A stretch of DNA of 64,000 nt from Oculina patagonica (Eukaryota), in contig NC_135771.1 of the NCBI RefSeq assembly GCF_052425735.1, forward strand, positions 4,526,001-4,590,000, given 5' to 3'. The translations under genes were made by a program, and so were the position numbers. A model generated the notes under the pieces. The model saw only the letters and a list, made by a program, of their open reading frames with translations, did not search any database and was not told where the DNA came from. Positions 1 to 63,828 of the stretch are shown here, one piece after another (the first letter of the stretch is position 1; each line of letters begins with the position of its first letter).

Positions 1-45
1 CTTTGTTTTAAGTCACTGGTGAGTTTCAGAGGTTCTTACACTGAG

Positions 46-308: not shown

Positions 309-550
309 ACTGAGGTTTCCCCGAATTTTGTCCTTTGTGGATTATGGATTAATGGATTGCCTTTTGCAACACGATCAAGTGTGCTGTAAGTTTGTATCAG
401 TATTCATCAGTTTTCGGTGTTCGTTCTGTACTTTGGTATTTTCCTGTTTTGCATTTTAAGTTGAATCAAACAATTGCAAAAGAATATATTTATCAGACAA
501 CACAATCAATTTGAGGAATGTTTCCAAACAATAAAGAAGATGTCGCAAAC

Positions 551-754
551 CTTAAAACGCGTGCTTTGACCAGATCCGTATCTTCGGATTCTCATTCGGT
601 TTCCAAGAGGCGCACGTGACTTCTGGACAACACGTGGACTGGTCCTACGCCATGGTCCGTTGCACATGTCAATAGTGACCACGTCATTGTTCTCACGGAT
701 AGCCACACCACAGTTACACACCACTCGCCAGCAAGGCCAGATACGTGCATGCAC
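551..754 (-). CDS. VWD domain exon (VWDE-type)
   Basis: 204 nt; VHARIWPCWRVVCNCGVAIRENNDVVTIDMCNG, matching the VWDE-type FEVH.R.W.C..CNCG..E..D.V..DMCNG pattern. Confidence 0.88.
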
Positions 755-20820: not shown

Positions 20821-20863
<43 letters not shown>

Positions 20864-23800
20864 TTAAAGAAAACAGACTTTACTTATCAATAAACTACAC
20901 ATTTCCTATTTCCTCATAATTTAAACGTTTATCCCTGTAAGGGTAAATTGAGACCACTTCTGAAACCAAACGTTTCTTCTTTGATCAAGATACCGAATGA
21001 AGCACCTCCTCATCACTTTCAACGTAACTTTATTTTTTCGCGTTGTGAGATGAGAAAGGAAAAGGAGTTGCGAAGCGAGAATTCAAGCGAGCTAAGGAAC
21101 AATTCAAGCTTAGTCCACATGCACTATGTGTTTATAATGGATAATTAACACAATTCACCCTTGTTCGTCCATACTGCTTGTAAGGGAAGAATGTTCTGCC
21201 ATTTCTGCTGTATGACACAACATATGACATCACCCACTGGTGAGCATCTTGCCTTCCTTGAGTGGCCACACCCGTGAGGCGGCCCATGACACCAAAGTCA
21301 ACCTAATTAAACAAGAAATTAACATTATTACTCACAAAGATTGAAATACTGAATTGCAAAATGGATTGGGAATTAATTAGGTGTTTTGTAGAGGAAATGC
21401 TTTAGGTACAAATACGTTTTATGTTGAGGAACAGCTTTAACGACTGTTAAGTGTAGTGCCGGACGTATTAAAGTTTATTTCCTCGATAAACGTCATTTAC
21501 CCAAAGTGAATTGGGCCCTTAAACTATCTAAAACCTTAAAGGGCTAGGTTGTTTGAAAAATCATTAGTCTTGCATTTTAAAATGAGCATAGAGGAATGCA
21601 ATGCTGTTAAATGGGGAAAAGGAAAAGGGATCATGCGGGAAAATAAACACTTTCCTTTTGAAGACATTAAATTCGAAGATGCATTGCTTTCTCGCTTACA
21701 TATTTCTTTGCAAACTTTACACTTACTTATGAAACCTGTTAGAACCTACACTGAGATGTTTTCCAAACTTTGCCTATTGATTATTTATCTTATAGGAGCG
21801 TAGATTTTAAAAACAAAAACCGAGGGTACCCATGCTTGTTTAGGAGTAACAGCACCTTGTTCATAACTAATAAATCCATATAATATCACCATGATTATAG
21901 TCACGATGGCTTGCTAAATTCACGTTTCCAACTATTATTTCTTATTCTACACTGAGAATTGATCCATATTTATTCCACAGAATGAAAGCTTCTATTTAAT
22001 TCAAAACAACAGAAAATAATGATAGGTCACCGTACTCGTTTAGGAGAAATTGACGATTTACCTCTCTGGCATGGTCCAGCGTAAAGAAAAAAGCCGCCAT
22101 TTTTGGGTGCGCGCGCTAATCACACGTGAAATTATGCGCAGTAGAGATGCGCAATGCAATACTGTGGAATAACCCTAACCCTAAATGCTGCCTCATTAAA
22201 GTACACAAAGATATATGTACCTGCAGCCATTGTCTAGCGTTATTTCTCTGGGCACACCAGGCCCCAGTCCTACCACGACTAGCATACATGTTGAGTCGCC
22301 CGCGATCTGGGCCGTGTTTAGAGTTATAACTTGAAGAAGCAGACAATGCACCGCTTGAGATACGACGATCTTCTAGACCAATAGGAACCTTGCACCTCCC
22401 TGGATAGGAAATAAGGGCATAATTATTTAACTTGTATAACATCAAGTGGAGACAATGCTGTTGAATACCGAATGATGCATTAAAACAATGACCAATGTAT
22501 CACTACTTTACACAGCATGAAAATGGAGATTTACAGGAAACAAAAGGTGGCTTAAATCTCCTTAAAGTTGGTCATCCCACTTTAAGCTATCAGTTTAAAT
22601 GTTACTTTTAAAGATAAGAGGTGAAAGTTTCAGAAATACAGTTAAAATTCCTTTACTTTACGAGAAATTTGGAATCTGCCTTGTATGATAACAATGTAAC
22701 AAATGCCATTAGCTCGGAGAAAACAATTTTGCCCCTAACTTTTTCTTGCCTGTAGCACCGACAACAGTGTTATCCCAAACTCATTAATTATTCATCAAAA
22801 TAAAACAAAGGAAATCAGAACCGTGGCGGTGATTTGAATATGATCTTAATTTCCAAAGATTTTTTACGATTTTATTTCTGCTTTCTCAACAGTTTTAGTT
22901 TTGATTGAGAAGATATATCAGACACTCGAGAGAGTGTTTCATCACATTTCAAAACACCTCGAAGTTTGTCAAAAATACTCCGCCGCGCGTCCTATTTTCA
23001 ACTCTCTTCTCGGTGTTTAGAAATGTGATGAATCAGTCTCTCTCGCGCGTTGACATATTACATCAAATTGTTATGAGTAAAATACAAAGTGAATTTCTAA
23101 AGAAACAGTAAGATGTAACCTACCGATAGCACAGCCATAGAGCTCAACTCTGGTAGAGATGTGTCTGTACCAGGACCTGATGTGAAGTCGCACAAAACGG
23201 CCTCGGATTGGTGGGATGAGGGCATGGGAAACAACTGTGTTTCTATCACGGTTAGCTTGGAAAATCTGTCGAATGGAGATGTGGTAAAATATCGTATTAT
23301 TTCTCTTCCTACGTCTCGAAATAACGTTTAATATGTAAATCTTACTAGTCGATTGACACGGTCGTGGTGAAAACATATTTCTACAATAGTCTAAAATTAT
23401 CAATGTCATTTAATGCTTACTACGAGCAGAATTCAATAGCTTAAAATGTAAGCGCGTAGTTCCATCCAGTGAAGAAAACAAAAATACCCTGATTTTTCCC
23501 TGATAGAAAATAACACTGATAGAATGAAAAGAAGCTAATTAATCCTTTAAATCTCCTTTTACTTATTTTTTGGATAGGACAACTAGCATTGGCCACAACA
23601 GGACAGCCGTTATAAACTATGCTCATAATTAACCTTAGCTTGAAATAAAATTCGTGACTTTTCTTTAACTTTGACCATAAAAATGGATTTCCTTGAGAGA
23701 TACTGAATTCCCTGACTTTTCAATTTTCTGACGGAAATTTTTTGACCTGTGGCAACCACGTTTACCTGCATACAAATAACTGGAAATAAAACCCACCTTC

Positions 23801-26800
23801 TTCCTGTTGCGTTCAAAATAAGATGCAAAATAAACGCCGTCCTGACCATACAGTAAATAATACGATGTAACCCACTGGTTAACATTGGGTCGGCCTTGAG
23901 TAGATATACGGACCACTTTAGTTGATCTCCCTAAGTCAATCTGTAACCACTGGTAAGCGTTGTTTGTTCTTGCAGACCAGCTGCCCATGTAGCGACCCCT
24001 GCGTTTGTTTTGTAGTCGAGCTAAATGAGGAGCATGGTAATTGTCCCAGCGAGAGGATGATGTCATGGCTACATTTTTGATGCGGCCATTCTGCATTCCC
24101 AGTGGACGATTGCATAGTTTACCTGTAAAGGCAATGTCATATACAGTGTTAAGATTTTTTCGGTGCTCTGACGTGACTTCATTATCCTAGTTTTTTCTTA
24201 TTCAAAATCTCTCCATGTACAGCATAGGACTGCTAAAAATAATGTTGATGGTAGCACAGTCGAACATCTCCTCAGGACACCACCATAATACGGACACACT
24301 TCCCTGGCTTTTGGTGTCCGTATTAATGAGGTTCGACTGTACTTCCAATACGCACATATCACGATTGTCTAATGACGTTTAAATAATGATGGACTGAGAA
24401 AGGGAGTAATCTTTCTTACAGAGCGTTTAATACTCCCAAAACACGTCACTGAGGCGTTAGCACGTTACTTTGTATAGGATAGGGGACAGCTATTTTTGAC
24501 AGCACTTAAATGATAATGTAGTTATTGCATAAATTCGTTGAGAACGAAACGAATAGTTTGTTGTAAGTGGGAATTTGTTACATCGGAAGTTCGTTATACC
24601 ACCATACATGATAAAGTTCGGTCACTGTGCTAAGACATTTTCTGTGATTTTACAACGTTAATTTTTTTGGACTGTTTCTTTCCTTTGTTTTTTTCTCTAT
24701 TAAGGTATTTGTAGTATCAGGGTTGCCTTGTACTAGAAATGTTTTACTTTACGTGTTCTTACCTAGCCTGCAGCCGTAAAGTTCTACTCTCATAGAGATG
24801 TGACTTCGCCACGTTCTGGGGTGAATACGTACATAGCGTGCTTTGAATGGGCGGAGGAAGCGGTGCGTTACTACGAAATTCCTTTCGAAGTTTCCTCTGA
24901 AAATCTGTGTAAAACGAATTAAAAAAGGAGACATCAGGAAATAGGTGTTATTTTAATGTCCACGGATTTATTAGGCAAGCCCTCAACTATACTCTACTCG
25001 TAAAGGTAGACAAATTGTGATTTGTATATGTAATCACAACACAATAGAAGGCTTTCCAATGAAGATATTCCTTCAGAAATCTAAGATCAAGATTATGAAA
25101 TTCTCCTTACTTATCGACACGCATTCTGTTAATGTTATTTGTAAGAATTTATTGGTACATCAGGACAATATCTCCTAGTTGATGATTTTCTTTGTTCTCA
25201 TCATTTGCCGACATTGCTGAGCTCTGTGTACGGTAAAAAAAAACACAATTACGTCACCTTAGTCCTCCTTCCTTCCTTATATGGGATAAATCTGACGTTG
25301 TTTAAGCTGTAGGACACTGCATAACTCGTGACCCACTGGTCAGCGTCATATCTACCCTGAGTAGCGATTCTCTTCAGTCGGCTGACAGTTCCCAAGTCTA
25401 TATTCAGCCATTGCCTCATATTGTTGTACCTGGTGGTAGGTAAGAGTGTTACATCATGACAGATTAGTTGAAATGCTGGTTTCACGATTTTTTCATTTAT
25501 TCGCAGTTGAAAGAGCATCCGGTATCTATACAGTCAACTGTCTCTAAAACGGAGATCGTCGGGACCGGCTCCAGCTGTCCGTCTTAGAGAGTTGTCCATC
25601 TTATAGAGAGTTAAGTTACAGTTAAATAACTGAAAAAGGACAGGGACAGGACCAACTCCAGGTGTCCGTCTCATAGAGGTGTTCGTTAGACAGAGTTGAC
25701 TGTATTAGGAAACATAAGTATGCAAACAAACACAGTAGAAAGAGTTACGAACTTTGCAGAGTAAATTGTAGTCAAAGGCAGGTTAAAAATGCACTAAAAA
25801 TAGGAAAAAGTAATATAGTGAACACCATTTTCATAAAAATAGCAATAACGTTTTGAAAAGTTATTGAACTCTGAAACAGTTTGTTTACGGAATATAAGAG
25901 CATCTTTACAACGAGAATTTTGTAGTGCTGAAAAAAAAAACATGAACTAAATTTGAACATTTAAGACTAAGTTTGTCAAGTACAACAGTATGGTACTTAC
26001 TTTGCGATCCAGCCTCCTCGTACATAGCCGTGATTCCTGGACTGCAGTCTGGCATTCCATGGTCCATAGTAATAGTTATACATGGAGGATGCTGTCACAG
26101 CCTGCTTGGTTACGCGGCCGTCTTCCATTCCCAAAGGAACATCACAAGGATCTGATAAATAAATGAAACAAAGAAAACGTAGTAAAAAATAACACATGTG
26201 CGTAACGAATGAGTAACAAGTAAAATAAACTCTTCTTCCGCAATTCACGGTTGCAAAGGAAAGTTTCATATTTTTCTGAGGACAGTGCAGTGTGGTGGGG
26301 TGTTGTTGGCCAAGGTGAGGTACCAATGAGATTTTTGATCACGTTATCAAGACTTGTATGTTACAGACTCTCAGTTGGCGGGGCTGTAGCGCCGGGCAAG
26401 TGAGGAAAAATGAGAGGTGGGCAGGAGAGATTGGGACGCCAAATCCCCTTTGGCACTCCTTCCTTCTCAGAACACCCTCGCTCCCACTCTCACCTTGCTT
26501 TTCGTAAACTTTTCTTTCGCCACCAATCTACAGCTTGGAAAAGGCTATATCAAGACAGCGTTCGAATAAGATTTAAATGCAAATTGTCGATCAAGAATTC
26601 CAGCGGGTCAATGGAAAAAATCTCACTAAATCACCAGACATTTTCTGAGAATTTGTCGGGTCAGGTAGCTAACCTCGTCGGGTTTTTGACCTGAGAACCA
26701 TCTCTTATCTGGAACACTCTTGCAATTATACAGCGTTCTGCTAGCTATCTAGGATGATTAGCCAAAGTCCAGGGAATAAGACTGGGCACATCACTCCAAG

Positions 26801-50800: not shown

Positions 50801-53800
50801 AATCCAGAGTTCTCATTGTTGTCTAGATAAAATTCATGTAAGTACTTAATTAATATCATCATGGTGTGTTTTTACAACTGATATAGATATTCTATAAGCT
50901 TTTTATTTAATTAAGTCACTAAGTTACAAAGTGTGTTCTTGGCTCTAATGCTAAGTTGGCTCATGTTTTTTGAGAAGTCTGTAAATAATGCAAATAAAGT
51001 TTGACCATCTAATGCAATGCATCATGACGTCTAGATCTGTTTCGTAACATTTCCTTCCAGGCACTTTCGTAGCTCCCCATATCTACTGTTATACTACTAC
51101 TTCTACTTTTATAATATGTTTTTGATGCAATATTTACATTTTAATTTAACATTAAAAAGATATGTAACATTACCTTTCTATTGTTTCGCTCTTTGTACTC
51201 CACAAAATTGATCGCATTAACACTGTGAGTAATGTAATACTGCGTGACCCATTGATTTGCATCCTGCCTGCCTTGAGTGGAGATCTTAATGATCTTGGAT
51301 GGCCTTGTGAAGTCAATCTGGAGATACTGATATCTATTATTACTCCTTGCACACCATGCACCCATGTACTTTCCATGGCGTGGGCGATGGAGTCTCCCCA
51401 AGAAGGCAGCATGGTACCTGTCCCACTGAGAGGAGGCTTTCATGAGGTGGTGTTTGAGACGTCCATTTTGTAATCCCATTGGTCGATTACACAAGTGACC
51501 TTGAAAAGAGAAAGAAATTGCATGTTCAGTTATGGTAAGTACATTGAATTCCACCCCAACTTAAGAAATGCGATGTTTTAGAGCAATACTACAAGGAAGA
51601 ACAGCATGATAGCTTTCGACAGAATGGGTATAATGGAAATCGGTTTGACTTACGGTGCAACACATCAAATACTCTTAAGGCCTGGCTTAACTAGGAATCA
51701 TTGTTCCTTGTCATGTGGCCTAATGATAGGGAAACAAGGAAAATGTTTTGCTGTGCAAGTGGGTAAACTTGGAAACAATGTTCCGGGAACAAAGTGTCAC
51801 GTATGCGCATAAACCGGTCAGCATTGTTCCCATGGTGGCTAAACTGGGCAATATATATTTCGAAAGCGAAATTTGTGTCCGGAAAGCAAAAATGTTTTTG
51901 ATTTGAGGCAAAACATTTTTTGTTTCCGTGAAGCCAAAATTTGTTTCTGCAACATATGTTTCTGTTTGGCTAAACTGGGAAACATTTGGTTCCTAATTTA
52001 GCCAGGCCTTTAGGTAATATTCAACAAGGTTATCGTAGCTCATTGTTCAAAACGCTCATGCTACTGAATTTTGTAATTGGGGCTATTTAATTAAAAACTC
52101 TTTAAGTAACGGTAGCACCATTTGCAATGTATAAGAACAATACTGTGAGAAAGAATTGCTTCATACCTTTAAAGAATGGTTCAATTTCAATGGACATTTG
52201 GTTTGACGTACGGCGTAATGTATCAAATTATCAAGGTTACCACAGTTCAGTGTTCAGAGCGCTCATGCTACAGAATGTTCGATGAGTAACCCAGCAGAAT
52301 TTGTCAACAATGGCACAGTTCCCAGACTAGGTAAAGACCTTCTAGTTATGTTACTATCGTTATGTTGGTATGTTATTTTACACATCCCTTACCCAGTCTA
52401 CAGCCGAAAAGTTCAACTCTCATAGAAATGTAGCTGTACCAACTCCTGACATTGATGCGCACATAACGAGCCACAAATGGCCTGAAGAAACGATGAGTCA
52501 CCACGTAGTACCTCTCAATATTGGCTTGGAAGATCTTAAATGAAAGAAAAAACATTTTGCATGGCCTGTAAATACCTGACAACCGAGAAAAAGTCCAAAT
52601 AATATCTTAAAAGGCCTTAACACTAAAAGTAATTTATAGTCACAGTATGTTAGGGTGGCTAATCTCTACACTGAGTAGTTGCAAAGTCTGCAAACAAACA
52701 ATGTCTGCCCGAATCGCACAATAGGAGCTGTAAAATTTTGAAACGCAGACACATGACACATCCCAGGTCATTTGAATATCCTCTTAGGACACTGCTGCCT
52801 GTTTCTTCAAAATGTCTCTCACATCTTAGTGTGCAAACGAACTTGCAAAATGAAGTCATTTTACCTGCGTTTCAATAGGTTTTTCACTTTAGTGTCGAAG
52901 TAATTCGTGTTTGCTTTGGTTTTGCATGACTATGCTTAGTGATTGCTTTATAAATATCGCGCCACTTTCTCAACCAACTAAAACCAATCGTGCTTCGCTT
53001 TCACGCACTTTCCCGCGCTCCTGTCTGGTGTTTTCATTGGTTCACTGGATTGTCCCCGTCCTTTGTGATTGGCCGAGTGATTACTTTGCTTTTGGCGTTA
53101 CAGCATTCAAACGAAAAAAATAGCTCTATAATAAAATACATTTGTTATCACTCTGATGTATGCCAGCATACCCTTGTCTTTCTTCCCTCTCTGTAAGGCG
53201 CAAACTTGTCACCCTTCAGGCTGTAAGACACTGTGTAGGACTTGACAAACTGGTTGGCATCATATCGTCCCTGAGTAGAGATTCTCTTCACTCTAGACTT
53301 TGCTCCCAAGTCAACCTGTAACCACTGCTTAGTGTTGCGGTACTTAGCAATCCAGCCTCCTCGGGTGGAGCCATAGTTCCGTGCCTGCAGCCTGGCGCTC
53401 CAGGGACCATAATAGTGGTTGTACATGGATGAGGCAGTAAGCATAGCTGTGGTAACACGTCCGTCTTGAAGACCAAGAGGAACGTCGCATGGATCTGTAC
53501 AAATGATAAATAATAAATAAATGTTCCTTTTAGTAACTTTCATCAGAGTCAAAACCAAAATGCTGCAAGAAATATCGTAAGAAGGAGGTGGCGTATGGTG
53601 TTTTATGAAATTTAGAATGTGGACAAAACAGCCCTTAAACAGCCCTTAAAAATGTAAGTGTGTTTCATCAACAGGTCATGGTCTTCTTAGTGAACCAGCT
53701 GTTCAAGTAATATATCAAACACGAGACACAGCGTTTGATCGGGATATCCAAACACCGAGAAGATAGTTGAAAATACGACGAGCAGCGGATTATTTTTGAC

Positions 53801-56800
53801 GAAATTCGAGGTGTTTGGATAGCTGATAAACACTGTCTCGGGTGTTTGATATACGGGGTATCTTCTCAATCGAAACAAAAACTACGGAGTAAACAGAGAA
53901 ATAAAATCGTAAAAAAATGTCCTAATTAAGACCGGGTATCCAAACCTTCTTCACAGTACGTACCATTGAAAAAATATTTTAGATCGGTCCTTGTAAACCA
54001 TTGGAGCTCTTGCAGTCTAACATGTTGGATCATGTTTTAATGACAAATCAGATATATAGACAGAAGCTTCTAACAATTTTTGGAAAAACAGCTATTGTTA
54101 ACATAAAGATTTTAATAGTGCAGCTTACAAGCCTAAAACTATTGTCCATTTAACACTAACCAGCTCTGCATCCATAGATTTCCACTCTCATTGAGATATG
54201 ACTTCGCCATCCCCACGGGTGAATTTTGATAAACCGAGCATAAACTGCAGGATTAAGAGCTTGGATTTTGATGCTGTTTTGATCATTGTTGCCACGGAAA
54301 GTCTGAAAAGAAATCATTCCACATGAATCATACATGTAAATACTTGCAACTCAGAGCACAACATTAATGAAAAAAATTGCTTCTGTGTTACAGGTTTCTA
54401 CAGTTCTTTCTCGTTTCCATGTTAAAATCCAAATTCATTTTTTTTCATGTTTCTCTTAAAACCTACGTAAAACCTTTCATCTGATTTTTATTTAGCAAAA
54501 AACCTTTATCGCCGTTCTTGATGCACCTCAGGAAAAATAGACGAACGCACAAAAAAACACCCTTGAAACCACGCATGCACAAAACCACACCCTACTCTAG
54601 TCATAATGTAGCCCTTGATTATTTCACTTGGAAATATCCAACTTCCATGGTCGCTATTCTTTGCAAGGTTCTGTATTTATCACATTTTCTCACCTTGTCA
54701 CTGTTTTTGAATCGATACACTTGCCAATGAATGCCATCTAAACTTGAGGATACTCGATAGTATGTCACCCACTGAGCAGCGTCCTGTCTCCCCTGAGTGG
54801 CTATCTTTGTGATTTTCATTGCTCGACCGAAGTCCATCTTAAGCCACTGATTTTTGTTGTTGTGCCTTGCGCACCAGGCTCCAACATATCTACCTCTCTT
54901 GTGGTGACCCAGTCTCCCAAGTCTAGCCGCATGGTAAACGTTGTATTCTGAGGATGCCGTGATTCTGTTGTTTCGGAGACGACCATTTTGTAATCCCAAG
55001 GGAGTGCTGCACAGTGCACCTGGAAAAACAATATCAATATCATTAACTTTTTAACTCTTTTTATTACTGTTGGCAGACATTGGTCGTTTTCACACTAGAA
55101 GACAGACAAATCGTCTCGACGGACGAGTCGTCTGACGATTTGTTCGTCTAGTGTGAATTTAAGACGGATTTTGGACGACTTGTCCCTCTCGATCACCAAG
55201 TCGTCCTCAAAAAATAGTCATCCTAGACGGACAAATCGACGGACAAATTCAGACGACTTGAACATCTAAAAACGTGTCCGACCCGTTTTCATACAAAGTT
55301 GATTTGTCCGTCTCAGACGATATGTCTGTCTAGACGATTTGTCCGTCTCCAGTATGAAAACGGCCATTAAGCCTATACCAACAAAAAAGCAAATTTGTAT
55401 TGTGCCATTTCAACTTGTTAATGATTGCAGATTTGTAATGATTGCCAAATTGAGGTAGCTGGGATGGCCCATTGGTCATGTTGAATTCCACATTCAATCA
55501 GCCAAGAGTGTTCAGAGTCATTTAGCACAATGTGAGGTTCCAGAAAAAATCCATACCCACACCACAGTGACTTACTGGAAATTCCTTTGGGGAGGGGGTC
55601 TCAAAAGCCAAAACGTTTAAAGGAAAGTATGAAACTAAACTGGAATTTCCAGTGGAGTGAGGGAGGGGAAGGGTGGGATCGACAATCGTATTTAGGGCAA
55701 TCTTTTATTTTTGCACATTTGGTTAGCTCACTAAGGCTACCGACGGCTTTCTTCCAAAAGGAATTAAAAACTAAGAAACTTACTTGTACAGCCAAAGAGT
55801 TCAACTCTCATTGAAATCCAACCGTACCATGTTCTTGGATGGATTCTGACATAAGCAGCACTGAATGGCTTCAAGAAACGGTGATATACTACAGAATGTC
55901 TGTCACTGTTTCCTGAGAAAACCTACCACGGAAAAATAATAATCTGTCATTAATATTGTAAGCTAATATAAAAAAAATTATAGTATGGTTAATGTTTAGA
56001 CTTGTTCTAGCCAGTGTGAATTTTAAAATAAATAGATGAATGAGACAAACTATATACAAACCTAAACCTTAACATTGTTACAATATCTGTATCTCGAAAA
56101 GGTCTTTTTGACAGAAGACAAGCGAAACGTTTTAGAAACAACACAACACTTTTAAGGAAGACTATTTAATAGTCATTATCAGTCCAAGAAAAACAACAAT
56201 TTTAACGTGTTTAAACGTGCCGTTTCACCATGTTGATTTAAAACTCTTTAAAGTACTCACAATGACATAGTTATGCACTCTTTTGCTGCCTTGTCACAAA
56301 TTAGCAACGTAATTCTAAGTTTATTTTATTTATAGTCATTTGAAATTCAACTTATTAATATATTTCGTAACTGACTTCTCACAGTAGGGACTGTCGAACC
56401 ATGTCTTTTTCAAAACTCAAAAGAGATGTGTTGTGTTGTTTCAAACCCTTTACAGCAAATATTGCATGTAAGTGACAGAGCAATTTGATACGAATTCTCG
56501 TATGACAACTGCTGCCCTTTAAAAGCATGAGAAAGTACTGGTGAATAGTTTCAAATCTGCTAACCAAACGATGCTCATATCATAGTAGTTAGAATATTCA
56601 TTAGCCTATACTTATTAATTAACAATTGCATTCAAAGTCTTGTCCAGAAGACAACCTTGTACCCACGCCAAAATCAGCTACTTAAAAAACGCGTTTTTAC
56701 GCAACACTCTAGTTATTACGTGTAAAGATTTATCATACTCTTACCTTGATGCGTCGGTTTTCTCTGTAGGGAACGTAGCTTACACCATCTCGACTATATG

Positions 56801-59800
56801 TCACTATATAGGTCTTCACCCATTGGTTGGCATCTTGTCGGCCTTGTGTTGCTATTCCTTTAAATTTTGTTATATCACCGAAATTAACCTTGAGCCACTG
56901 TTTGGTATTTCTAGTGCGTACACTCCAGGACCAGCGGTGGTTCAATCTGCCATGCCATGGTGAAAGGTGGTGGTTGTAGTAGGTAGAGGCTGTTATATCT
57001 CCTGGAGTGAGACGCTTGTCTTCTAAACCAAGAGGCATGTTGCAACGGTCTGCAAAGTAAGATGAACAAAATGCAATGAACAAGTAGTAAAAGTTAAGAC
57101 TAAAGGAAAATTTACAAAGAACCAGAGAAGGGACATCCTGGGTACCAGAGGATTTTTCTCGCACGCAGCGGATTACTCTTCAGCGGCCGACATGACCGAC
57201 ACCAGAAGCTGTGCAAGAAAAACCTTTGTCACCAAGGGTAGAGAAGGGAAGAAAGGAACAAACAAATGGACAAACAAATAAGCCTGCCTCTCCAGAAAGG
57301 GGTGAAAGGAGGGACGGAGGGAATCAGGAAAACATTTCATTTAAACTAGAATGACTAACGTAGAATAAGTTTGGGGACTATCATTAAGAACCAAGATTAT
57401 TATTAAAATAGTGGTATTATTAATGGTTGTATGAGAAAAACATCAAGGCCAACGATGGCAACCAATAATAATGTGATTAAACCTGGGAAACAGTATTGAT
57501 AGTCATGTCTAGATAAATAAAGTAAAAAAAAATTATTCACACCTTCAACGCATCCATAGAACTCCACTCTCATAGAGATGTGTTTATACCATCCCCAAGG
57601 TCGAACCTGAATAAACCGTGCCTTGATTGGTGGATAGAACCTGTGCTGTACCACTGTGTTTTGGTCTCGGTTACCTTGGAAGTACTAAATAAAAAGAAAC
57701 AACGAAAATTATAAAGGACACATAGCTAACTTCAGAAACATTATTTATCAGGAATCCTTGACCATAATGAGAAGGAACATTCCGGTTGGTCCAAATTTTG
57801 CAATATCGTAAGCTTAGGTGAACCACGCCCAAAATAGCTTAGCTGACCCAGTTTGGGTTTTTTGAAGCATTTTGCAAAAGAAAGCAAACTTCATAATAAG
57901 TGGAAGCGTTTTTTTCACATGTCTGGCCAATGATTTTGGTTTAACATCTGGGAAAGAAGCTTCAACTTCACGATGCTCAACACAGCTATGCAAATTTGCA
58001 GATAATAGATGCCTTATGTATCAGCAAAGTTATATTGTAGAAGAGCCCTTAATTGCAAAATGAATTTGAACACAACGAATTTTTCCCCGATACAAAACAC
58101 ACACTAGCACAATACAACATCTACATATAAAGGTAAATACAACAAACGTACCTTTCTATTGCTGTTTTCTTTATACTCAGCGAAATTTGCACCATCTTGA
58201 CCGTATTTAACGAAAAACCGTGTCACCCACTGACGTGCGTCTTGTCTTCCTTGAATAGCAATCTTCACTACACGCATGGAGCGTCTGAAGTCCACTTGTA
58301 ACCACTGGTAGTGATTATTGTGGCGTGATGACCACGCCCCAGTCCTCGCGCGGCTTCTACGCCAATACAGTCTGGCATTACTTGGTCCATGATTTCGATC
58401 CCACATGGAAGATGCTGTGATTTGATTGGCACGAACGCGGCCATTTTTCATTCCTAAGGCTTTGTCGCATCTTGGGCCTATTGTGGGAAGAAAAGGCATG
58501 TGTGAGTATTGTAACTAAACTTAGAAAGTTATAGAAATATATATTTAGATACAAGCAGTTTATTGAAGTTCATTTTAGAATCAAAATTAATACAAAAACA
58601 AGAAAAGGATAAAAGAAAAGAATTCATAGCTTAATTGATTAGCTTTGCTGATCTTGATCACCACTATTTAAACATGAAACCTGTGACATTATTAACCCCC
58701 TATCTAGTCTTTCTTAGTTGTGTGATTGCGCGCATAAAGGCAAGAAAGATAAACAAATTTAAGAAATTGACACTTATGATTACATTATATATACATAAAC
58801 CTACCAATGACGCAACCATAGAGCTCAACTCTCATGGAGATCCAGCTACGCCAGGTGACAGGATGTATCTTGAAGTAACGACCCGCCAGTGGTCGCATAA
58901 ATCGGTGCCTTACGACTACATATCTGTCAAAGTTACCTTGGAAAATCTGGGAGATAAAAAAATAGACCATAAATCCACAAGTTTTACTCCTTTCTTATTT
59001 CAAGCCTCAAAGTATAATAATTGATAAACCCCCTTCTCTATTATCAGCACATAAAACAGCCTCCACTGAAAATTATATAAACCCCCTGGCTGTCCCTACA
59101 ACCCTCTCTAACAAAATCAAAAGTGAAAGAAAAAAAAGTAAAACATGTTTTGTAAAAACTTATTCTAAAATACGCTTAGTCTGGTCTTCTTAACCAGTCC
59201 AGAGTTTGAAATATAAACTCTTCTTGCTGCCTTTTTACTTACAATTTTATTGCTATACACTTTTTTATGTAAATTTTGAGAATTTGGTGAAAAATCAAGA
59301 TGAAAATCCCTCCTTGTGACCTGTCTCCTTGGATGGAAGTAACGTTTTTAACTTACATTTGTCTTAGAGCGGTTTTTACTTGAGTGTGGAAAGTAATTCG
59401 CATTTGCTTTGGTTTTGCATAACTACGCTTAGTGATTGGTTTAAAAAAAACTTGCGCCACTTTCGCAGCCAATCGAAAGTATAACCAAAAGCAATTGTGA
59501 TTCGCGTGCGCCCTTTTCCCGCGTATTTGCTTGGAGTTTTGATTGATTAATTCGATTGTCTGTATTCTTTGTGATTGGCCTGAGTGATAACTTTGGTTTT
59601 GGTTTTACGACACTCAATCGAAAATCGCGCTATATCCTTTTCCAGAACACTAACTAACCTTTGTTCTTCTGTACTCCTTATAGGTCACAAACCGGAATCC
59701 CTTGACACTATAAGATACATAGTAACTTGTGACCCACTGGTCGGCGTTCTGTCGACCTTGAGTAGCAACTCGTGACACACGAGTAAGCCCTCCAAAGTCA

Positions 59801-62800
59801 ATCTTGAGCCACTGGCGTTTGTCATTTCGTTTCGCATACCACGCCCCTCCAAGCCTACCCACACGTCGCTGGTGGAGCCTGGCGTTTCTTGGTGCACCGT
59901 AGAAGTTGTAATATGAGGAAGCCGTGATGAGTTGGGCAGGGACACGGCCATCTTCCAATCCAAGAGGAACGTCACACCTACCTTTATTAAAGAAATGAAA
60001 ATCAGTTAAGTGGACATCAAGGAATATAAAGAAATTCTCCACTTAATGAGAACAATAATTTATTGGACAATTTTTGAAGACCAGATTTATAGGAGATTAA
60101 CTTCAGCATGTTCAAGTAGTTGAACTTCATGTAAACAGCAATCTGACCATCCGAAAAAGATGTTACATGTACCTCAACCAGATTGCAGTTTCTACGAAAA
60201 CAATTAGACAACGAGCCTTTGCTTTCTATAAACGATAATGAACTCGGCTTCGCCTCGTTAACTATTCGCTCAAAGAAAATTCGGATTCGTACTCTTGTTC
60301 TCAATAAATAGCGCACATTAAGGTCTTTTTACTTACTCCATGCGCCAGCAAACAGCTCAAGTCTCATTGAGATATGTGAACGCCAGCCACGTGGGACGAT
60401 TTTAACGAATCGTGCATACAAGGGAGGGTTGAATGAGCGAGTTTGAACACCATTTCGATCGTAATTTCCTTTGAAAGTCTAAATACAGTACAACAAAAAG
60501 GAAAACAAACAACAGTCAAACAAATAAAAGAGAGTATAGAAAAGTAAAACAAGTTTACGTTTCCCTAAAAATTTACCTGACTTGCAAGATTAATTATCAT
60601 TTCTGCAACCATTTCAATCTAGTCAAAAATCTAATCATCCTTACTTGCCCATGACTTTCAAAATTTGTGCTTTTATAATGTTACACAACAGAAAAGTGCC
60701 AGAACTGGTTACAAGTGCTATGACCGACGTGTATACCTTCCTCATTGTACTGCAATAAGCTCTTTGCAGAACATGGTCATGGGACAAGGGGTAGTGCAAA
60801 ATGATTCCCAGAAACACAAAGAGCACGATGAAATAAGTAAGGTTGCCCTTTTCGAGACTGCTGATGCTTAAACGTTAGATTTTATAGTAGTTTAAAGGCT
60901 TTAAAAGTTTAAAGGATTTGTATGGAAAGAGTTGCTTGATGGCAAGGCTTGCCCTCCAGTATACAAATCCTCAAATTTCAAAAACATTCAAACCACTATA
61001 AAACCTCACACTTACGCATCAGCAGTCTCAAAATTAGCAACCTTTAATTTCATCATGTTCTTTTCATTTTTGGCAACCATTTTGTCCTACCGCATACTTT
61101 TATAATTGACAAGATCACGTGATCGGTTTTCTGCAAAGGGCCTATTACCCCCAAAATCATCTGCTTTGAGGAGAACACTGCCTTTGTATGAAATGCACAG
61201 CTGTAAATTTCGTTTTACGATTTGACATATTTTATTACTGTCAACCAAAATGAACACAAAAAACACTTACCCTGATGTAATCCCACCAATATGTGACTCT
61301 AGAATAGTGAACTCCATCTAAACTGTAGTAAACATAATAGGCAGTCACCCATTGGTCTGCATCTTGCCGTCCTTGTGTTGCGATACCTGTGACCTTGGAT
61401 GACCTTCCTAAGTCAATCTTCAACCACTGGTTGTGGTTGTTATGGCGGGAAGCCCATGAGCCGATGTAACGACCCTGCTTTGCAATATGCAATCGGGCAC
61501 GGAATGGAGCATGGAATTTGTCCCATTGGGATGAGGCGGTCATGGCAGCATTCTTAATTTTACCACTTTGAATACCTTGGACTTGGTCACAGAATCGTTC
61601 TAAGGAGAGAATTGAAAAGGATATTGCATTTCACAAATCGCTGCTTTTTGTCTTTAGACTACAGGGCTTTCATTAAGATTTTAGTGTAGAGCAAAGAGCA
61701 ATAAAAGAAACTGACATTATCTCCCCTTCACAGGAGCTGCACGAACGTTATCCGGCAAATCACGAGAGGATACCCGCCGGAGCTCTGGTGGGTGCCGGGT
61801 CTTACTGAAAGCCCTAGAGACAAAATAACTTACTAGAAACATTTTTCAGCGTGAACTTTAACCGCTGCAAAAGCCTTACAACCAACATTTGACTTTTTTA
61901 ATTTTAAGGCTAGTTGCAAATGTAACTATTGCATTTCATAGATTTTAGCGACTTATTTTTAGCATAATTATCATTTTTCAAGTTTTTAATTCTGGGTGTA
62001 ACATTTAAAGTGGGTGGGTTAAAGTGGGTTAAAAATTTTTTACTCATAAGATATTGTAATCTAGCTATTTTTATGTAATCTAGCTATTTTACAATATCTA
62101 GATATTGTAATCTAGCTATTTTACATGCTTGAGTGAAATAATTGATCGTCAAGAAATCCCGCTCGCAAATTGTACTGTGATAATTACATAATACACCCAA
62201 ATTTGTCTGAGTTGAGTAACACAAATAGAATTTAGCCGGAAACATCGTCGATTTCGTTTTAAACGCGTTACTTTTTTTAATTTTCATGTAATTTCATTGA
62301 GCTTACCTTTATACCGACAACCGTACAATTCTACTCGCATGGCAATATAACTGCGCCAAGTCTTGGGATGGATACGTAGAAAACGGGCCTTGATTGCTGG
62401 GATTATCTTGAAAGAAACTGTGTTGTAGATATCGTAGTTACCACGGAAAACCTAACAAAAAAGGAAATCATGGTAAAACCGAGTTATTCAGTTTTCAAGC
62501 ACGCACAAGCACATCTAAACATATATGCAGGTCCTGATTGCAAAGAACTTTCAGAAAAAAAATCAAAACTGGGGCTTCAGTGGGATTGAAACGCATGACC
62601 TGTGTGATATACTAGTGTAGTGTTCTACTGTAACTACCTTGAATAATAAAGCAAGTTCATTTTAAGTAATTTTCACTTTTGTGCCGAAAGTAGTTCGCGT
62701 TTGGTTTAGTTTTGCATTACTACGCTTAGTAATAGCATAGTTAATGGATGGTAAGAGAAACCTGCGCTGCTTTCTTAACCATTCAGAAGTAAAACTAAAA

Positions 62801-63828
62801 CCAATCAGTGTTTTCCCGCGCTTCATGCCGGCATATTTTGCTTCAAGTTTTGATTGGTTCAGTGGACTGTCCGTGTCCTTCATGATTGGCAAAAAATGAT
62901 TACTTTGGTTAGAGTTTTACAACACTGGATTGAAAACCGCTCTATGTAAACACAATAACTATAAACTGGTGATAATGTAAACGTTTCATTTTCATATCAC
63001 CAAGCATGCTGCAGTACCAGAAAGAAAAGCTGACAAACCAACAAGTACACCGTGTGTGGAAAAAACAGACAATCGGTTTTAAACAACTCTAAACAGCATC
63101 TCACCTTAATCCTGCCATAAGCTACATATGGTCTAAAGCGCAGACCCTTCGCGCTATAGGACAGGGTATAACTTTTCACCCATTGATGGGCTTCTCTCCG
63201 TCCTTGTGTAGCGATTCCTTTGATGATACTCATCTGCCTCAAGTCAATCTGTAGCCACTGCCTGTTGTTTCGATATTTTGCTACCCAGGCCCCTGTTCGT
63301 CCATGGCCGGCGTAGATGTTAAGACGTGCTCGGTCAGGTCCGTGATTGTAGTTATAAGAAGACGAGGCTCGTAGATGACCCGACAGGATACGACGGTCTT
63401 CCATACCAAGCGGCATAGTACATTTGTCTGTAAAAGCAAACATCCAATATTGATTTTAGGCGTGCAAACCAAATGTCAAATTTGAATTGACATTTTTAAA
63501 ACCTTTTTTAGAACAAATGTTAATACAAAGGTGATAGAAAAAATGATTATAAGAAAAATCTAAGCAAAGAATCTGAATTTAAAACAAACTTTCCCAAGGA
63601 TGCACATGAAAAGAATGATAATGCTAATGATGAGATGTTTGGGGGTTTTAATGCTTGTCACAAAAGTTACTCTCTTTGCTTTGTACCTGTTAGGCAACCA
63701 TAGAATTCTAATCTCATGGAGATATGTCTGTACCATCCCCATGGACGAACGCGGACGTAGCGACATCTGAGGGCAGGGATGAAAGGATGACTGACAACTG
63801 TATTCTGGTCTCGGTTGCCTGAGAAATA
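551..63828 (-). CDS. Partial giant multi-exon gene: >=35 tandem discoidin (F5/8 type C) domains followed by a VWDE-like Ig-like + VWD module; 5' and 3' ends outside window
   Basis: 80 exons with GT/AG boundaries and compatible phases. Repeated motifs C..PLG..DGR/NGRI..ASS..ARL..GAW..QWLQ.D..TQGR..QWV..Y.SYS.DG and F.GN.D..ARF.R.HP..W..HISMRVE.YGC. No start or stop exon seen between modules. Confidence 0.9.
1159..1225 (-). CDS. VWD domain exon
   Basis: 67 nt, phase 2-0; YYDILRNAGTYVMVKSLRRNFE. Confidence 0.85.
1456..1529 (-). CDS. Start of von Willebrand D domain
   Basis: 74 nt; VVTSNRGAKKCQGTGDPHYRTFDN, matching the VWD signature C...GDPHY.TFD. Confidence 0.9.
2112..2429 (-). CDS. VWDE-like region, exon 3
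   Basis: 318 nt; VHPKTLSM...LPIRC...PVRDF...FWKGYRLPPIR. Confidence 0.85.
2895..2934 (-). ncRNA. Minimal hammerhead-ribozyme-like motif (Penelope-type remnant)
   Basis: TCCC-CTGATGA-A-GACTTAAGTTTAAGCC-GAAACGTT-GGGA. Confidence 0.55.
3177..3263 (-). CDS. VWDE-like region, exon 2
   Basis: 87 nt, phase 0-0; VACRVRARYSSGKDWTMNTRSKDLFTGIK (resembles the VWDE S..FFAGIK segment). Confidence 0.8.
3633..3737 (-). mobile_element. tRNA-derived SINE head fragment
   Basis: Reverse-strand tRNA-like A/B-box sequence; related fragment at about 62555-62630. Confidence 0.5.
3797..4023 (-). CDS. VWDE-like region, exon 1
   Basis: 227 nt, phase 1-0; DYPVISRPVVRAVIKPGRGCSKVALRCYF...GFKAGTT. Confidence 0.8.
4059..4200. 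other. Assembly gap
   Basis: 142 Ns, preceded by (TCAA)n. Confidence 0.99.
4350..5697 (-). CDS. Discoidin D35 (last of the array, extra intron)
   Basis: Exons 5574-5697, 4910-5117, 4350-4491. Confidence 0.9.
6326..7305 (-). CDS. Discoidin D34
   Basis: Exons 6986-7305 and 6326-6467. Confidence 0.9.
6487..6640. repeat. (CAGT/CAAT)n microsatellite
   Basis: Tetranucleotide tandem repeat. Confidence 0.95.
7370..7761. mobile_element. Foldback MITE
   Basis: TIRs of about 60 bp (CAG.CAGCCCAAGCTT..TTTGAACTTCATGTAGCCGTCA.GGCGATTGTATTTATA) plus an internal hairpin. Confidence 0.75.
7923..9663 (-). CDS. Discoidin D33 (type 8-like, extra intron)
   Basis: Exons 9510-9663, 8911-9082, 7923-8064. Confidence 0.9.
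8287..8618. mobile_element. Tc1/mariner-like MITE
   Basis: TIRs CCGTA.AATTCCGGTTATAAGCCC, TA flanks, internal GGGCTTATA repeats. Confidence 0.8.
10073..11444 (-). CDS. Discoidin D32 (type 7-like, apparent +1 frameshift)
   Basis: Exons 11121-11444 (324 nt; 323 expected) and 10073-10214. Confidence 0.82.
10506..10752. mobile_element. MITE with 9-bp TSD (Mutator-like TSD size)
   Basis: TIRs containing GTTAGTGGGGGCGAAACGAAG; TSD AACCTCCTC at 10497-10505 and 10753-10761. Confidence 0.8.
10795..10965. mobile_element. CAGTCAAC-ended mariner-like MITE family
   Basis: TIR CAGTCAACT...AGTTGACTG, internal GTGTCCGTCTTA repeats; relatives at 24257-24339, 25531-25702, 28946-29121, 35312-35440. Confidence 0.75.
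11972..13158 (-). CDS. Discoidin D31 (position 6 of the unit)
   Basis: Exons 12827-13158 and 11972-12113. Confidence 0.9.
12471..12745 (-). mobile_element. tRNA-derived SINE
   Basis: Reverse-strand tRNA-like head (GGTTCGAACC B-box), core GTGTCTTGCCCAAGAACA and GGTACCCATTTATACACCTGGGT tail region. Confidence 0.7.
13427..14543 (-). CDS. Discoidin D30 (type 5-like)
   Basis: Exons 14242-14543 and 13427-13568. Confidence 0.9.
14100..14237. other. Assembly gap
   Basis: 138 Ns. Confidence 0.99.
14655..14695 (-). ncRNA. Second minimal hammerhead-like motif (degenerate)
   Basis: ACC-CTGATGA-T-GACTTAATTTAAGTC-GAAAAACGTT-CGGGT. Confidence 0.45.
15040..16191 (-). CDS. Discoidin D29 (type 4-like)
   Basis: Exons 15866-16191 and 15040-15181. 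Confidence 0.9.
16239..16515. repeat. Two degenerate copies of an interspersed repeat
   Basis: GTTCA..GGAT..TTATCCACTGGATAAATCGCTAT..GATAGT.ATTTATCCGG present twice. Confidence 0.55.
16697..18098 (-). CDS. Discoidin D28 (type 3-like, extra intron, apparent +1 frameshift)
   Basis: Exons 17919-18098 (180 nt; 179 expected), 17187-17330, 16697-16838. Confidence 0.82.
16922..17228. repeat. Tandem duplication (about 160 bp) including the D28 exon 3' end and donor
   Basis: GATAAGCAAGTGTTAAGTA.TTCGAGA..ACGTTACCTTGATTACTCT..TTTCTGTGTA..AACTAGAGCC present twice. Confidence 0.85.
18513..19628 (-). CDS. Discoidin D27 (type 2-like)
   Basis: Exons 19303-19628 and 18513-18654. Confidence 0.9.
20400..22399 (-). 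CDS. Discoidin D26 (type 1-like, extra intron)
   Basis: Exons 22221-22399, 21159-21302, 20400-20541. Confidence 0.9.
23124..24122 (-). CDS. Discoidin D25 (type 8)
   Basis: Exons 23797-24122 and 23124-23265. Confidence 0.9.
24763..26151 (-). CDS. Discoidin D24 (type 7, extra intron)
   Basis: Exons 26001-26151, 25258-25429, 24763-24904. Confidence 0.9.
25531..25702. mobile_element. CAGTCAAC MITE copy
   Basis: Alignable by eye to 10795-10965; TA flanks. Confidence 0.75.
27029..28667 (-). CDS. Discoidin D23 (divergent type 6)
   Basis: Exons 28360-28667 and 27029-27170. Confidence 0.9.
27495..27746. mobile_element. MITE/foldback
   Basis: TIRs ATCCACCGTA..GAAAAAGATGGC / GCCATCTTTTTCCATACGGTGGAT. 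Confidence 0.65.
27907..28326. mobile_element. Non-autonomous DNA transposon with CCCGGG(G)n ends and 8-bp TSD
   Basis: TSD AACTTCTG at 27899-27906 and 28327-28334; internal inverted ATACGGGGAGGCT motif and AAAGGGGTA repeats. Confidence 0.8.
28946..29121. mobile_element. CAGTCAA-ended MITE
   Basis: TA-CAGTCAA...TTGACTG-TA. Confidence 0.7.
29307..29850. mobile_element. PIF/Harbinger-like MITE
   Basis: Near-perfect TIR of about 45 bp, GGGCCTGTTTACATGATTCCGGAATGACTTTCATTCCGGAACGA. Confidence 0.8.
29891..31424 (-). CDS. Discoidin D22 (type 5)
   Basis: Exons 31135-31424 and 29891-30032. Confidence 0.9.
30928..31050. repeat. Palindromic interspersed repeat
   Basis: AACAGTTATTCCACTCGCGCTTG.TGGATATGA...TCATATCCAACGCGCGTTCGTGTAATAACTGTT. 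Confidence 0.65.
32106..33216 (-). CDS. Discoidin D21 (type 4)
   Basis: Exons 32891-33216 and 32106-32247. Confidence 0.92.
33891..34906 (-). CDS. Discoidin D20 (type 3)
   Basis: Exons 34584-34906 and 33891-34032. Confidence 0.92.
35520..36538 (-). CDS. Discoidin D19 (type 2, WWD)
   Basis: Exons 36210-36538 and 35520-35661. Confidence 0.92.
36801..37641 (-). CDS. Discoidin D18 (type 1)
   Basis: Exons 37319-37641 and 36801-36945. Confidence 0.92.
38054..39539 (-). CDS. Discoidin D17 (type 8)
   Basis: Exons 39214-39539 and 38054-38195. Confidence 0.92.
38367..38708. mobile_element. Kolobok-like MITE
   Basis: TTAA flanks, AG..CT termini, TIR AGATGA.TTCCAGTCCGTACTGCGCA. Confidence 0.75.
40776..41831 (-). 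CDS. Discoidin D16 (type 7)
   Basis: Exons 41509-41831 and 40776-40917. Confidence 0.92.
40993..41171. mobile_element. Kolobok-like MITE
   Basis: TTAA-AGGAGCAATGTCA ... TGACATAGCTCCT-TTAA. Confidence 0.65.
42076..42208. repeat. Hairpin repeat
   Basis: TATTGACCAAGCTTGTTCGGTCAAGATAGCTGGATA ... TATCCAGCCATCTTGACCGAACAAGCTTGGTCGATA. Confidence 0.7.
42299..43232 (-). CDS. Discoidin D15 (type 6)
   Basis: Exons 42907-43232 and 42299-42440. Confidence 0.92.
43437..44468 (-). CDS. Discoidin D14 (type 5)
   Basis: Exons 44164-44468 and 43437-43575. Confidence 0.92.
44982..46029 (-). CDS. Discoidin D13 (type 4)
   Basis: Exons 45704-46029 and 44982-45123. Confidence 0.92.
46667..47641 (-). CDS. Discoidin D12 (type 3)
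   Basis: Exons 47319-47641 and 46667-46808. Confidence 0.92.
48288..49124 (-). CDS. Discoidin D11 (type 2, WWD)
   Basis: Exons 48796-49124 and 48288-48429. Confidence 0.92.
49475..50222 (-). CDS. Discoidin D10 (type 1)
   Basis: Exons 49900-50222 and 49475-49619. Confidence 0.92.
50557..51499 (-). CDS. Discoidin D9 (type 8)
   Basis: Exons 51174-51499 and 50557-50698. Confidence 0.92.
51678..52009. mobile_element. PIF/Harbinger-like MITE
   Basis: TTA TSD; TIR AGGCCTGGCT.AA.TAGGAA. Confidence 0.75.
52393..53494 (-). CDS. Discoidin D8 (type 7)
   Basis: Exons 53172-53494 and 52393-52534. Confidence 0.92.
53708..53950. repeat. Interspersed repeat (inverted relative near 22850-23063)
   Basis: Shared ATTTTTGAC.AA.TTCGAGGTGTTT core. 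Confidence 0.6.
54161..55019 (-). CDS. Discoidin D7 (type 6)
   Basis: Exons 54694-55019 and 54161-54302. Confidence 0.92.
55081..55366. mobile_element. Harbinger-like MITE
   Basis: TIR TGG.CGTTTTCA.ACT.GA.GAC.GACAAATCGTCT. Confidence 0.7.
55784..57049 (-). CDS. Discoidin D6 (type 5)
   Basis: Exons 56745-57049 and 55784-55922. Confidence 0.92.
57543..58477 (-). CDS. Discoidin D5 (type 4)
   Basis: Exons 58152-58477 and 57543-57684. Confidence 0.92.
58805..59981 (-). CDS. Discoidin D4 (type 3)
   Basis: Exons 59659-59981 and 58805-58946. Confidence 0.92.
59365..59632. mobile_element. TAGAGCGGTTTT-ended MITE family
   Basis: Copies also at about 38938-39199, 52876-53127, 62665-62944; shared GAAAGTAATTCGC.TTTGCTTTGGTTTTGCA and GATTGG motifs. 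Confidence 0.75.
60337..61599 (-). CDS. Discoidin D3 (type 2, WWD)
   Basis: Exons 61271-61599 and 60337-60478. Confidence 0.9.
60755..61147. mobile_element. Degenerate foldback element
   Basis: Inverted arms GAGACTGCTGATGC/GCATCAGCAGTCTC, GGATTTGTAT/ATACAAATCC, TTTGCAGAA/TTCTGCAAA. Confidence 0.65.
62307..63427 (-). CDS. Discoidin D2 (type 1)
   Basis: Exons 63105-63427 and 62307-62451; DKCTMPLGMEDRRILSGHLRASS. Confidence 0.92.
63687..63828 (-). CDS. Discoidin D1 (type 8), second exon only
   Basis: 142-nt exon YFSGNRDQNTVVSHPF...HISMRLEFYGCLT. Confidence 0.9.

Follow-up and report, generated by a model that had tools for sequence, protein, structure and literature searches.

The 64,000-nucleotide stretch of Oculina patagonica DNA analyzed here (NC_135771.1, positions 4526001-4590000; hereafter the window) appears, judging from its sequence, to lie in the middle of a transcribed gene of giant size, whose secreted-type product would consist almost wholly of tandem discoidin (F5/8 type C, FA58C) domains. 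These domains recur in a fixed cycle of eight types. The explanation that we prefer for the whole, to which we give a probability of about 0.62, is that one domain grew into a dimer, then, perhaps through a tetramer, into an octamer, that the octamer was amplified in tandem, and that the giant product serves as an adhesive or matrix protein. Positions are counted from the first letter of the window, so that negative values and values above 64000 lie in its flanks; the genome searched was the 529-Mb assembly, and the domains are numbered D1 to D75 along the minus strand.

The window has a G+C content of 36-43% and few long open frames, as expected for an animal genome. On its minus strand, stop-to-stop frames alternate between long pieces (C..PLG ... 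TQGR ... K) and short pieces (F.GN ... YGC). From 63427 to 23124 they make up 24 discoidin domains (D30-D53) in 49 exons, all 49 flanked by AG..GT, as at canonical GT-AG introns, and the joined exons give a stop-free frame of 11,121 nt (3,707 codons). The ends of this segment are exact: an exon A starts at 63427, directly after an AG acceptor on the minus strand, and an exon B has its last base at 23124. Each domain is encoded by a long exon A (290-329 nt), which runs from phase 1 to phase 0 with GT directly after it, and a short exon B (139-145 nt), which opens in phase 0 and closes after the first base of a codon, two to three codons past YGC. The outer borders of every domain are thus in phase 1 on both sides (exon phases 1-0 and 0-1). 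The distance from the acceptor to the Cys codon is 5 nt in odd types and 8 nt in even types. Exon A alone scores 56-67 bits against Pfam PF00754 (cut-off 28.2; E 1e-15 to 1e-18), and exon B corresponds to profile positions 87-127. The framing N-terminal and C-terminal Cys are both present in 23 of the 24 domains and presumably pair as a disulfide. The best PDB matches were solved discoidin structures of factor V/VIII, lactadherin and neuropilin (E 1e-21 to 1e-24). Because the sequence matches to the factor V/VIII C2, neuropilin b1/b2 and lactadherin domains are strong, a beta-barrel jelly-roll fold with ligand-binding loops at one end is very likely.

Along the array, odd positions carry PLG(L/M)(E/Q)D.R and even positions carry (P/A)(L/M)G(L/M/I)(Q/K)(N/S)G(R/K). 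Other motifs are common to types four places apart: CDVPLG..DGR in types 3 and 7, C.MPLG.ED(R/K)R in types 1 and 5, and both EYKE..NRK and YF.GNRD.N...PWGW in types 4 and 8. The pair and alternation motifs quoted in a first-pass annotation, which had proposed a nested 2-4-8 hierarchy recording successive doublings, are present in the translated domains. Mean pairwise identity is 67.4% at a lag of eight domains and 65.8% at a lag of 16; the remaining even lags give 48-50%, and the odd lags 41-44% (about 42% between neighbors). When the type labels were shuffled, the minimum change count on the tree described below was reached in none of 200 shuffles, and the periodicity is far beyond chance.

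For the maximum-likelihood (ML) tree we took six octamers, or 48 domains, and the model LG+C20+F+G4 (153 columns). All seven types other than type 8 formed single clades; type 6 had 88/93, and the remaining six had starred support. Type 8 was a clade except for D53 (24122..23124), the last domain of the segment, whose grouping with the remaining type 8 copies was not firm; this is the one slip in the first-pass typing. Odd and even positions were split at 100/100, and D51-D53 branched below all other copies of their types. Each domain is closer to its partner eight places away than to its neighbors, and the types form clades across six to seven units; the array is a super-repeat in this sense. 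The proposed period of two with a deepest odd-even split is therefore borne out by the tree, and the octamer level with later tandem amplification by the type clades and the lag-8 identity.

The array continues beyond the upper end of the segment, since exon B of D29, from the preceding octamer, lies just upstream of D30. We scanned the window and 150 kb of flanks with a profile built from the 24 domains, which gave 159 minus-strand and three plus-strand exon hits. The hits stitch into 75 domains on one strand, from window position 151218 down to -24170 (4501830-4677218), a distance of about 175 kb. They include seven octamers and one partial unit, and the cyclic order is kept wherever the type can be assigned. 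Three more octamers (D6-D13, D14-D21 and D22-D29) lie upstream of the segment, preceded at the 5′ end by a partial copy in which D2-D4 join types 5-7 and D5, which occupies the place of a type 8 domain, groups within the even clade close to types 4 and 8; D1 is of the even kind but unplaced. In the octamer downstream of the segment, D54, D55, D56, D57, D58 and D60 join types 1, 2, 3, 4, 5 and 7, respectively (Shimodaira-Hasegawa-like approximate likelihood ratio test [SH-aLRT] 97, 96, 99, 91, 94 and 87), and D59 and D61 are inside the even clade with no firm type. D62 and D63 are unplaced, within or near the odd and even clades close to the base of the tree. Frames just downstream of D63 match VWD (L016:9446-9664) and EGF (L016:7259-7636) domains. 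Beyond these exons come D64-D75 (L016-L018, window -4908 to -24170), 12 domains without the N-terminal Cys and with their own period of four: (64,68,72), (65,69,73), (66,70,74) and (67,71,75). The gene would thus hold at least 63 tandem discoidin domains, possibly 75 if D64-D75 belong to it. If D1-D63 are one protein, its discoidin domains alone would exceed about 9,700 residues.

The copies are old and under purifying selection, and they have been conserved since two corals diverged. Between same-type copies, the nonsynonymous distance (dN) is 0.11-0.42, the synonymous distance (dS) is 1.15 or more where saturation allows it to be computed, and dN/dS is about 0.07-0.30 where it can be estimated. 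DNA similarity between copies ends at the exon borders, and the introns have no detectable similarity. A 380-kb contig from another coral assembly (L019) follows the order of the array from exon B of D25 through the complete domains D26-D34 to exon A of D35. Identity of these nine domains to their positional partners is 82-92%, compared with 62-85% to their best paralogues, so the octamers predate the divergence of the two corals. Among the octamers, D14-21 and D22-29 are sisters at every one of the eight positions but the second, which is unresolved. Other relations are mosaic: D9 and D33 are sisters, as are D11 and D35, but D10 goes with D18 and D26, not with D34. The amplification therefore did not proceed by copying whole units cleanly in a single register, which weighs against our explanation. 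Unequal crossovers at varying points within the unit would give such a pattern.

The tetramer step is harder to establish. Period 4 is nearly nil in raw identity (49.7% at lag 4, compared with 48.2% at lag 2 and 48.6% at lag 6). Exon lengths carry no signature between positions n and n+4, types 4, 6 and 8 being alike, and the order V,T,I,Y,V,T,I,Y of first exon B residues, seen in the first octamer, is not consistent across the other copies. The first-pass annotation had predicted the sister pairs (1,5), (3,7), (4,8) and (2,6). Only (1,5) was recovered in the 48-domain tree, at 79/76; (3,7), (2,6) and (4,8) appeared in 17%, 28% and 2% of bootstrap trees, respectively, but none was rejected by approximately unbiased (AU) tests (p 0.36-0.46). 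We also scored 225 type-level backbones with the within-type subtrees fixed (LG+G4). The best joined (((1,5),7),3) with (((4,8),6),2), and the strict 2-4-8 backbone ranked 18th of the 225 (5.5 log-likelihood units behind; p 0.26). Sorted by unrooted quartet, the class 1,5/3,7 with 2,6/4,8 was the best of nine, and the two congruent alternative classes were worse by 5.9 and 11.4 log units. Trees of the odd or the even types alone were ambivalent, the even-only tree giving 2,6/4,8 at 54%.

Tandem models with units of two or more domains predict one history for neighbors; we therefore concatenated adjacent domains as dimers (306 columns). In the unrooted dimer trees, the n/n+4 quartet received 81% in the register 1-2/3-4/5-6/7-8 and 94% in the register 2-3/4-5/6-7/8-1. 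Under LG+F+G4 it was again best in both registers, with alternatives 3.7-8.0 log units worse. The rooted dimer trees, which included seven octamers and outgroup dimers, recovered one predicted pair per register, (3-4,7-8) at 96/96 and (2-3,6-7) at 97/93. In AU tests on these trees, joining 5-6 with 7-8 was rejected (p 0.013) and joining 3-4 with 5-6 nearly so (p 0.083). The tetramer is thus the best-fitting history in every joint analysis and is favored roughly two to one, but it is not established. Within the proposed series of doublings, the dimer and octamer levels stand and the tetramer level is favored without being demonstrated. A topology without n/n+4 sisters, which the first-pass annotation had named as speaking against the series, is not what the data impose, and the predicted topology is likewise not demonstrated.

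Several results weigh against the tetramer and would suit a different history, in which the octamer was built from the dimer by stepwise or irregular duplications, for example the copying of single dimers with loss, and was then amplified without any clean doubling of a tetramer. The step is not significant: 94 of the 225 single-domain backbones survive the AU test, and both alternative dimer quartets survive it under LG+F+G4 (p 0.17-0.49). The odd-only tree prefers 1,7/3,5 (60%) to 1,5/3,7 (40%), and a quick 75-domain tree joins types 3 and 5. The rooted dimer trees are ladders, (1-2,(5-6,(3-4,7-8))) and (8-1,(4-5,(2-3,6-7))), where doubling predicts a balanced tree, and the complementary pairs (1-2,5-6) and (4-5,8-1) occur in only 4-7% of bootstraps. 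However, the two ladders contradict each other on the even types: the first makes 4 and 8 sisters with type 2 outermost, and the second makes 2 and 6 sisters with type 8 outermost. Both place the dimer with the long-branched type 1 beside the outgroup, and we therefore read the ladder shape as a probable rooting artefact. A ladder would also need non-adjacent copying, since 3-4 and 7-8 are sisters with 5-6 between them, and the balanced arrangement, with 1-2 and 5-6 in one clade, is not rejected (p 0.22). Given also that the n/n+4 quartet is best wherever domains are analyzed jointly, we regard an irregular build-up as rather unlikely, although it is the strongest competitor of the tetramer.

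Two further explanations would detach the periodicity from old duplications altogether. The likeness at periods 2 and 4 might reflect convergent or parallel constraint on alternating structural roles. A general idea holds that adjacent repeats in a chain are kept dissimilar, which agrees with neighbors being the least alike here, and several of the common motifs sit at the N-terminal end of the domain and at the exon junction. However, the 100/100 split between odd and even types extends over the whole domain and is accompanied by a fixed one-codon length difference before the Cys, the similarity is spread along the domain instead of being limited to a few sites, and tandem duplication is a simpler source of ordered periodicity; we consider constraint very improbable as the cause. 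Alternatively, ongoing gene conversion or recent homogenization might uphold the pattern, as the mosaic relations among octamers and the near-identical repeats of Acropora and Pocillopora poly-discoidin proteins could suggest. Against it stand the saturated synonymous sites of same-type copies, the introns without detectable similarity and the positional orthologues in the other coral, which are closer than any paralogue, and this leaves homogenization the least credible of the alternatives, with hardly any weight.

Overall, we propose the following history for growth of the array by duplication. One domain became a pair, the two members of which diverged into the odd and even types, as the tree shows. 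The two-domain unit then grew to eight, most likely by doubling of a four-domain unit, so that n pairs with n+4. Copying of the eight-domain unit in tandem, at least seven times, is again shown by the data. Because both outer borders of each domain are in phase 1, unequal crossovers with breakpoints in introns would add or remove whole domains in frame. Neighbors being only about 42% identical, larger units may have come to dominate, and misaligned pairing between the more similar copies one full unit apart would preserve the higher-order period.

None of the runs recorded as RNA contained the stretch, and we used four runs (X1-X4) whose RNA library type is only guessed. With this caveat, there is good evidence that the gene yields a spliced transcript. 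Contigs of the runs over 23100-29000 cover the predicted exons and avoid the unique parts of introns; several unique-intron bins have zero depth, and repeats have depths in the thousands. A joint from 26151 to 27029 with CT..AC borders (GT..AG on the minus strand) is the predicted junction of D51 exon B and D52 exon A and was seen in two runs from two studies. Contig pieces also stop at the predicted borders 25258 and 28360. The intronic stretches 27828-28418 and 25464-25857 reach depths in the thousands in all four runs and are therefore highly repeated, apparently transcribed elements.

A library search with exon A of a type 1 domain retrieved 4,281 proteins at E ≤0.001, the best of which were multi-discoidin proteins. 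The best matches have 12 domains in Pocillopora (uncharacterised), 8 in Acropora, 19 in amphioxus, 6 in sea-urchin nectin and 14 in Nematostella, and 19 domains is the longest discoidin array among the retrieved proteins. In a quick joint tree, the nectin, crinoid, Acropora and Pocillopora domains fell outside the clade of the coral odd and even types (SH-aLRT 82-89), and most Nematostella domains had very long branches apart from everything else. We class these proteins as paralogues, not orthologues; the named coral and anemone proteins retrieved supplied no further copies of any of the eight types. Pocillopora verrucosa XP_066029356.1, Acropora millepora LOC114977630 and Nematostella vectensis LOC5504709 resemble the present array in having 8-14 contiguous discoidin domains of about 155 residues. 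However, the domains of Acropora millepora XP_044171674.1 (8, six of them identical) and of the Pocillopora protein (12) are near-identical with a period of 1, and these arrays group with nectin, not with the eight types. They are either very young or homogenized, the opposite mode to an old, differentiated octamer.

The best named match to the type 1 exon A is nectin of Paracentrotus lividus (Q70JA0; 46% identity, six stretches), an adhesive and extracellular matrix protein that likewise has head-to-tail FA58C domains, each framed by a Cys pair. Nectin, with a signal peptide and six discoidin domains, is the one confirmed adhesive or cohesive protein of sea urchins, and combinations of FA58C, vWD and EGF domains recur among marine temporary adhesives (PMC10057474). 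Nectin differs from the present array in having six domains versus 63-75, in having no reported higher-order period and in lacking a VWD or EGF part. By analogy with the domain content of nectin and the discoidin/VWD/EGF adhesives, the gene most likely encodes an adhesive or matrix protein of great length that binds glycans or matrix multivalently. It counts against this part of our explanation that the function is deduced from domain content only.

Tandem pairs of two differing discoidin domains also occur in factor V/VIII (C1-C2), lactadherin (MFG-E8) and neuropilin (b1-b2), and the odd/even pair had been likened to C1-C2. We ruled out that odd and even types correspond to C1 and C2, as factor V/VIII C2 is the best match for exon A both of type 1 and of type 4; the resemblance is an architectural analogy only.

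Closer in organization are the 7- and 11-domain super-repeats of titin and the 7-module super-repeats of nebulin, in which multi-domain duplication, dissimilar neighbors and a fixed higher-order period are combined. As here, a domain is most similar to the one a fixed distance away, and the unit is copied in tandem many times. However, titin and nebulin are sarcomeric and built of Ig/FN3 domains or nebulin modules, whereas the present array has an extracellular-type discoidin fold, a unit length that is a power of two, a nested period of 2 and no known periodic binding partner. Titin super-repeats match the thick filament. By comparison, the eight-type super-repeat might be functional in itself, as a periodic scaffold or molecular ruler in which each type binds a different partner or glycan at a fixed spacing, because it has been kept position by position between corals under purifying selection. 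We hold this to be doubtful; if true, it could organize coral attachment, mucus or the calcifying matrix.

Multi-domain copying in repeat proteins and poly-discoidin proteins are both well known. Our literature search found no descriptions of this eight-domain discoidin super-repeat, which is a new instance, with a nested period of two and probably four, at least seven copies and conservation between corals. With 75 domains of the same fold, symmetric exon phases and three nested periods, it offers an unusually clean and long record of how repeat proteins grow, and its copies are old enough for comparison between species. It would also be a good test case for dissimilar neighbors pushing tandem arrays toward higher-order units, and in this gene there is a concrete candidate for a giant adhesive or matrix protein of corals. 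The features within the window are listed below.

Table 1. Array features in the window and exon lengths of the eight types (minus strand; slashes in the intron motif mark splice sites).
Feature	Position	Strand	Remarks
Exon B of D29 (type 8, octamer upstream of the segment)	63687..63828	-	HMM (hidden Markov model) positions 109-154, ends YGC, AG/GT borders
Octamer D30-D37 (first-pass domains 1-8)	50557..63427	-	16 exons, all AG..GT; types 1-8 in own clades
D30, D31, D32, D33	62307-63427, 60337-61599, 58805-59981, 57543-58477	-	
D34, D35, D36, D37	55784-57049, 54161-55019, 52393-53494, 50557-51499	-	
Octamer D38-D45 (first-pass domains 9-16)	38054..50222	-	16 exons, all AG..GT; 54-83% identity to same-position domains in D30-D37
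D38, D39, D40, D41	49475-50222, 48288-49124, 46667-47641, 44982-46029	-	
D42, D43, D44, D45	43437-44468, 42299-43232, 40776-41831, 38054-39539	-	
Octamer D46-D53 (first-pass domains 17-24)	23124..37641	-	17 exons
D46, D47, D48, D49	36801-37641, 35520-36538, 33891-34906, 32106-33216	-	
D50, D51, D52, D53	29891-31424, 27029-28667, 24763-26151, 23124-24122	-	
Extra phase-2 intron in exon A of D52	25430..26000	-	AA/GTAAGT ... CAG/G; absent from other type 7 copies
Seventh, older octamer D54-D61 (outside the segment)	7923..22399	-	Type placements in tree
D62 (odd-like) and D63 (even-like), last dimer before VWD-like region	4350..7305	-	HMM hits
Exon A/exon B lengths, types 1-4			323/145, 329/142, 323/142, 326/142 nt
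Exon A/exon B lengths, types 5-8			305/139, 326/142, 323/142, 326/142 nt

Individual domains show some peculiarities. In D31 (type 2 of the first octamer of the segment), positions 60337-60364 read ELFAGAW, where all other copies have ELYGC(P)W; the C-terminal Cys is lost, the frame and splice site are kept, and the N-terminal motif is odd too (CDQVQG). D60 (11100-11534) starts CDIPLGSEDSRL and continues PDVSFTASS... in another frame, a one-base shift that points either to damage in the exon or to an error of assembly. Three frames at 509-4033 gave no matches in Pfam and PDB searches. Just upstream of D1, long open frames on the minus strand (L012:8765-9346 and L012:7857-8045; window 152765-153346 and 151857-152045) read FDFERGNLYGWTKSGTAF ... 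IGGGC ... and ... GGWGHINFDD ...; they have no Pfam or PDB sequence match and may encode an N-terminal domain of the gene product.

Other observations concern introns. Exons A and B of D25 are parted by a 35-kb intron (between window 105184 and 70339). On the related coral contig, a seven-transmembrane (7TM) receptor gene (PF00001; L019:500-1549) is encoded by the other strand, immediately upstream of the exon B that matches that of D25, and such a gene is probably nested in this intron. Removal of the extra intron of D52 (26001 spliced to 25429) restores GGWIAK-YNNMRQW with no residues lost. It holds a 180-nt repeat with 20-nt inverted ends (25528-25547 and 25686-25705), for which a first-pass search gave 2,111 candidate genome copies; all 40 of those scored matched. 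A plain transposon insertion was ruled out as the origin of the intron, the repeat filling only about 180 of its 571 nt. D61 (9509/9090) carries an intron at the same domain position. A further intron near profile position 61-65 is common to D5, D54 (22206/21302), D56 (17907/17336), D65 and D75, peripheral domains that differ in type, and is perhaps an ancestral discoidin intron whose loss preceded the amplification of the core octamers.

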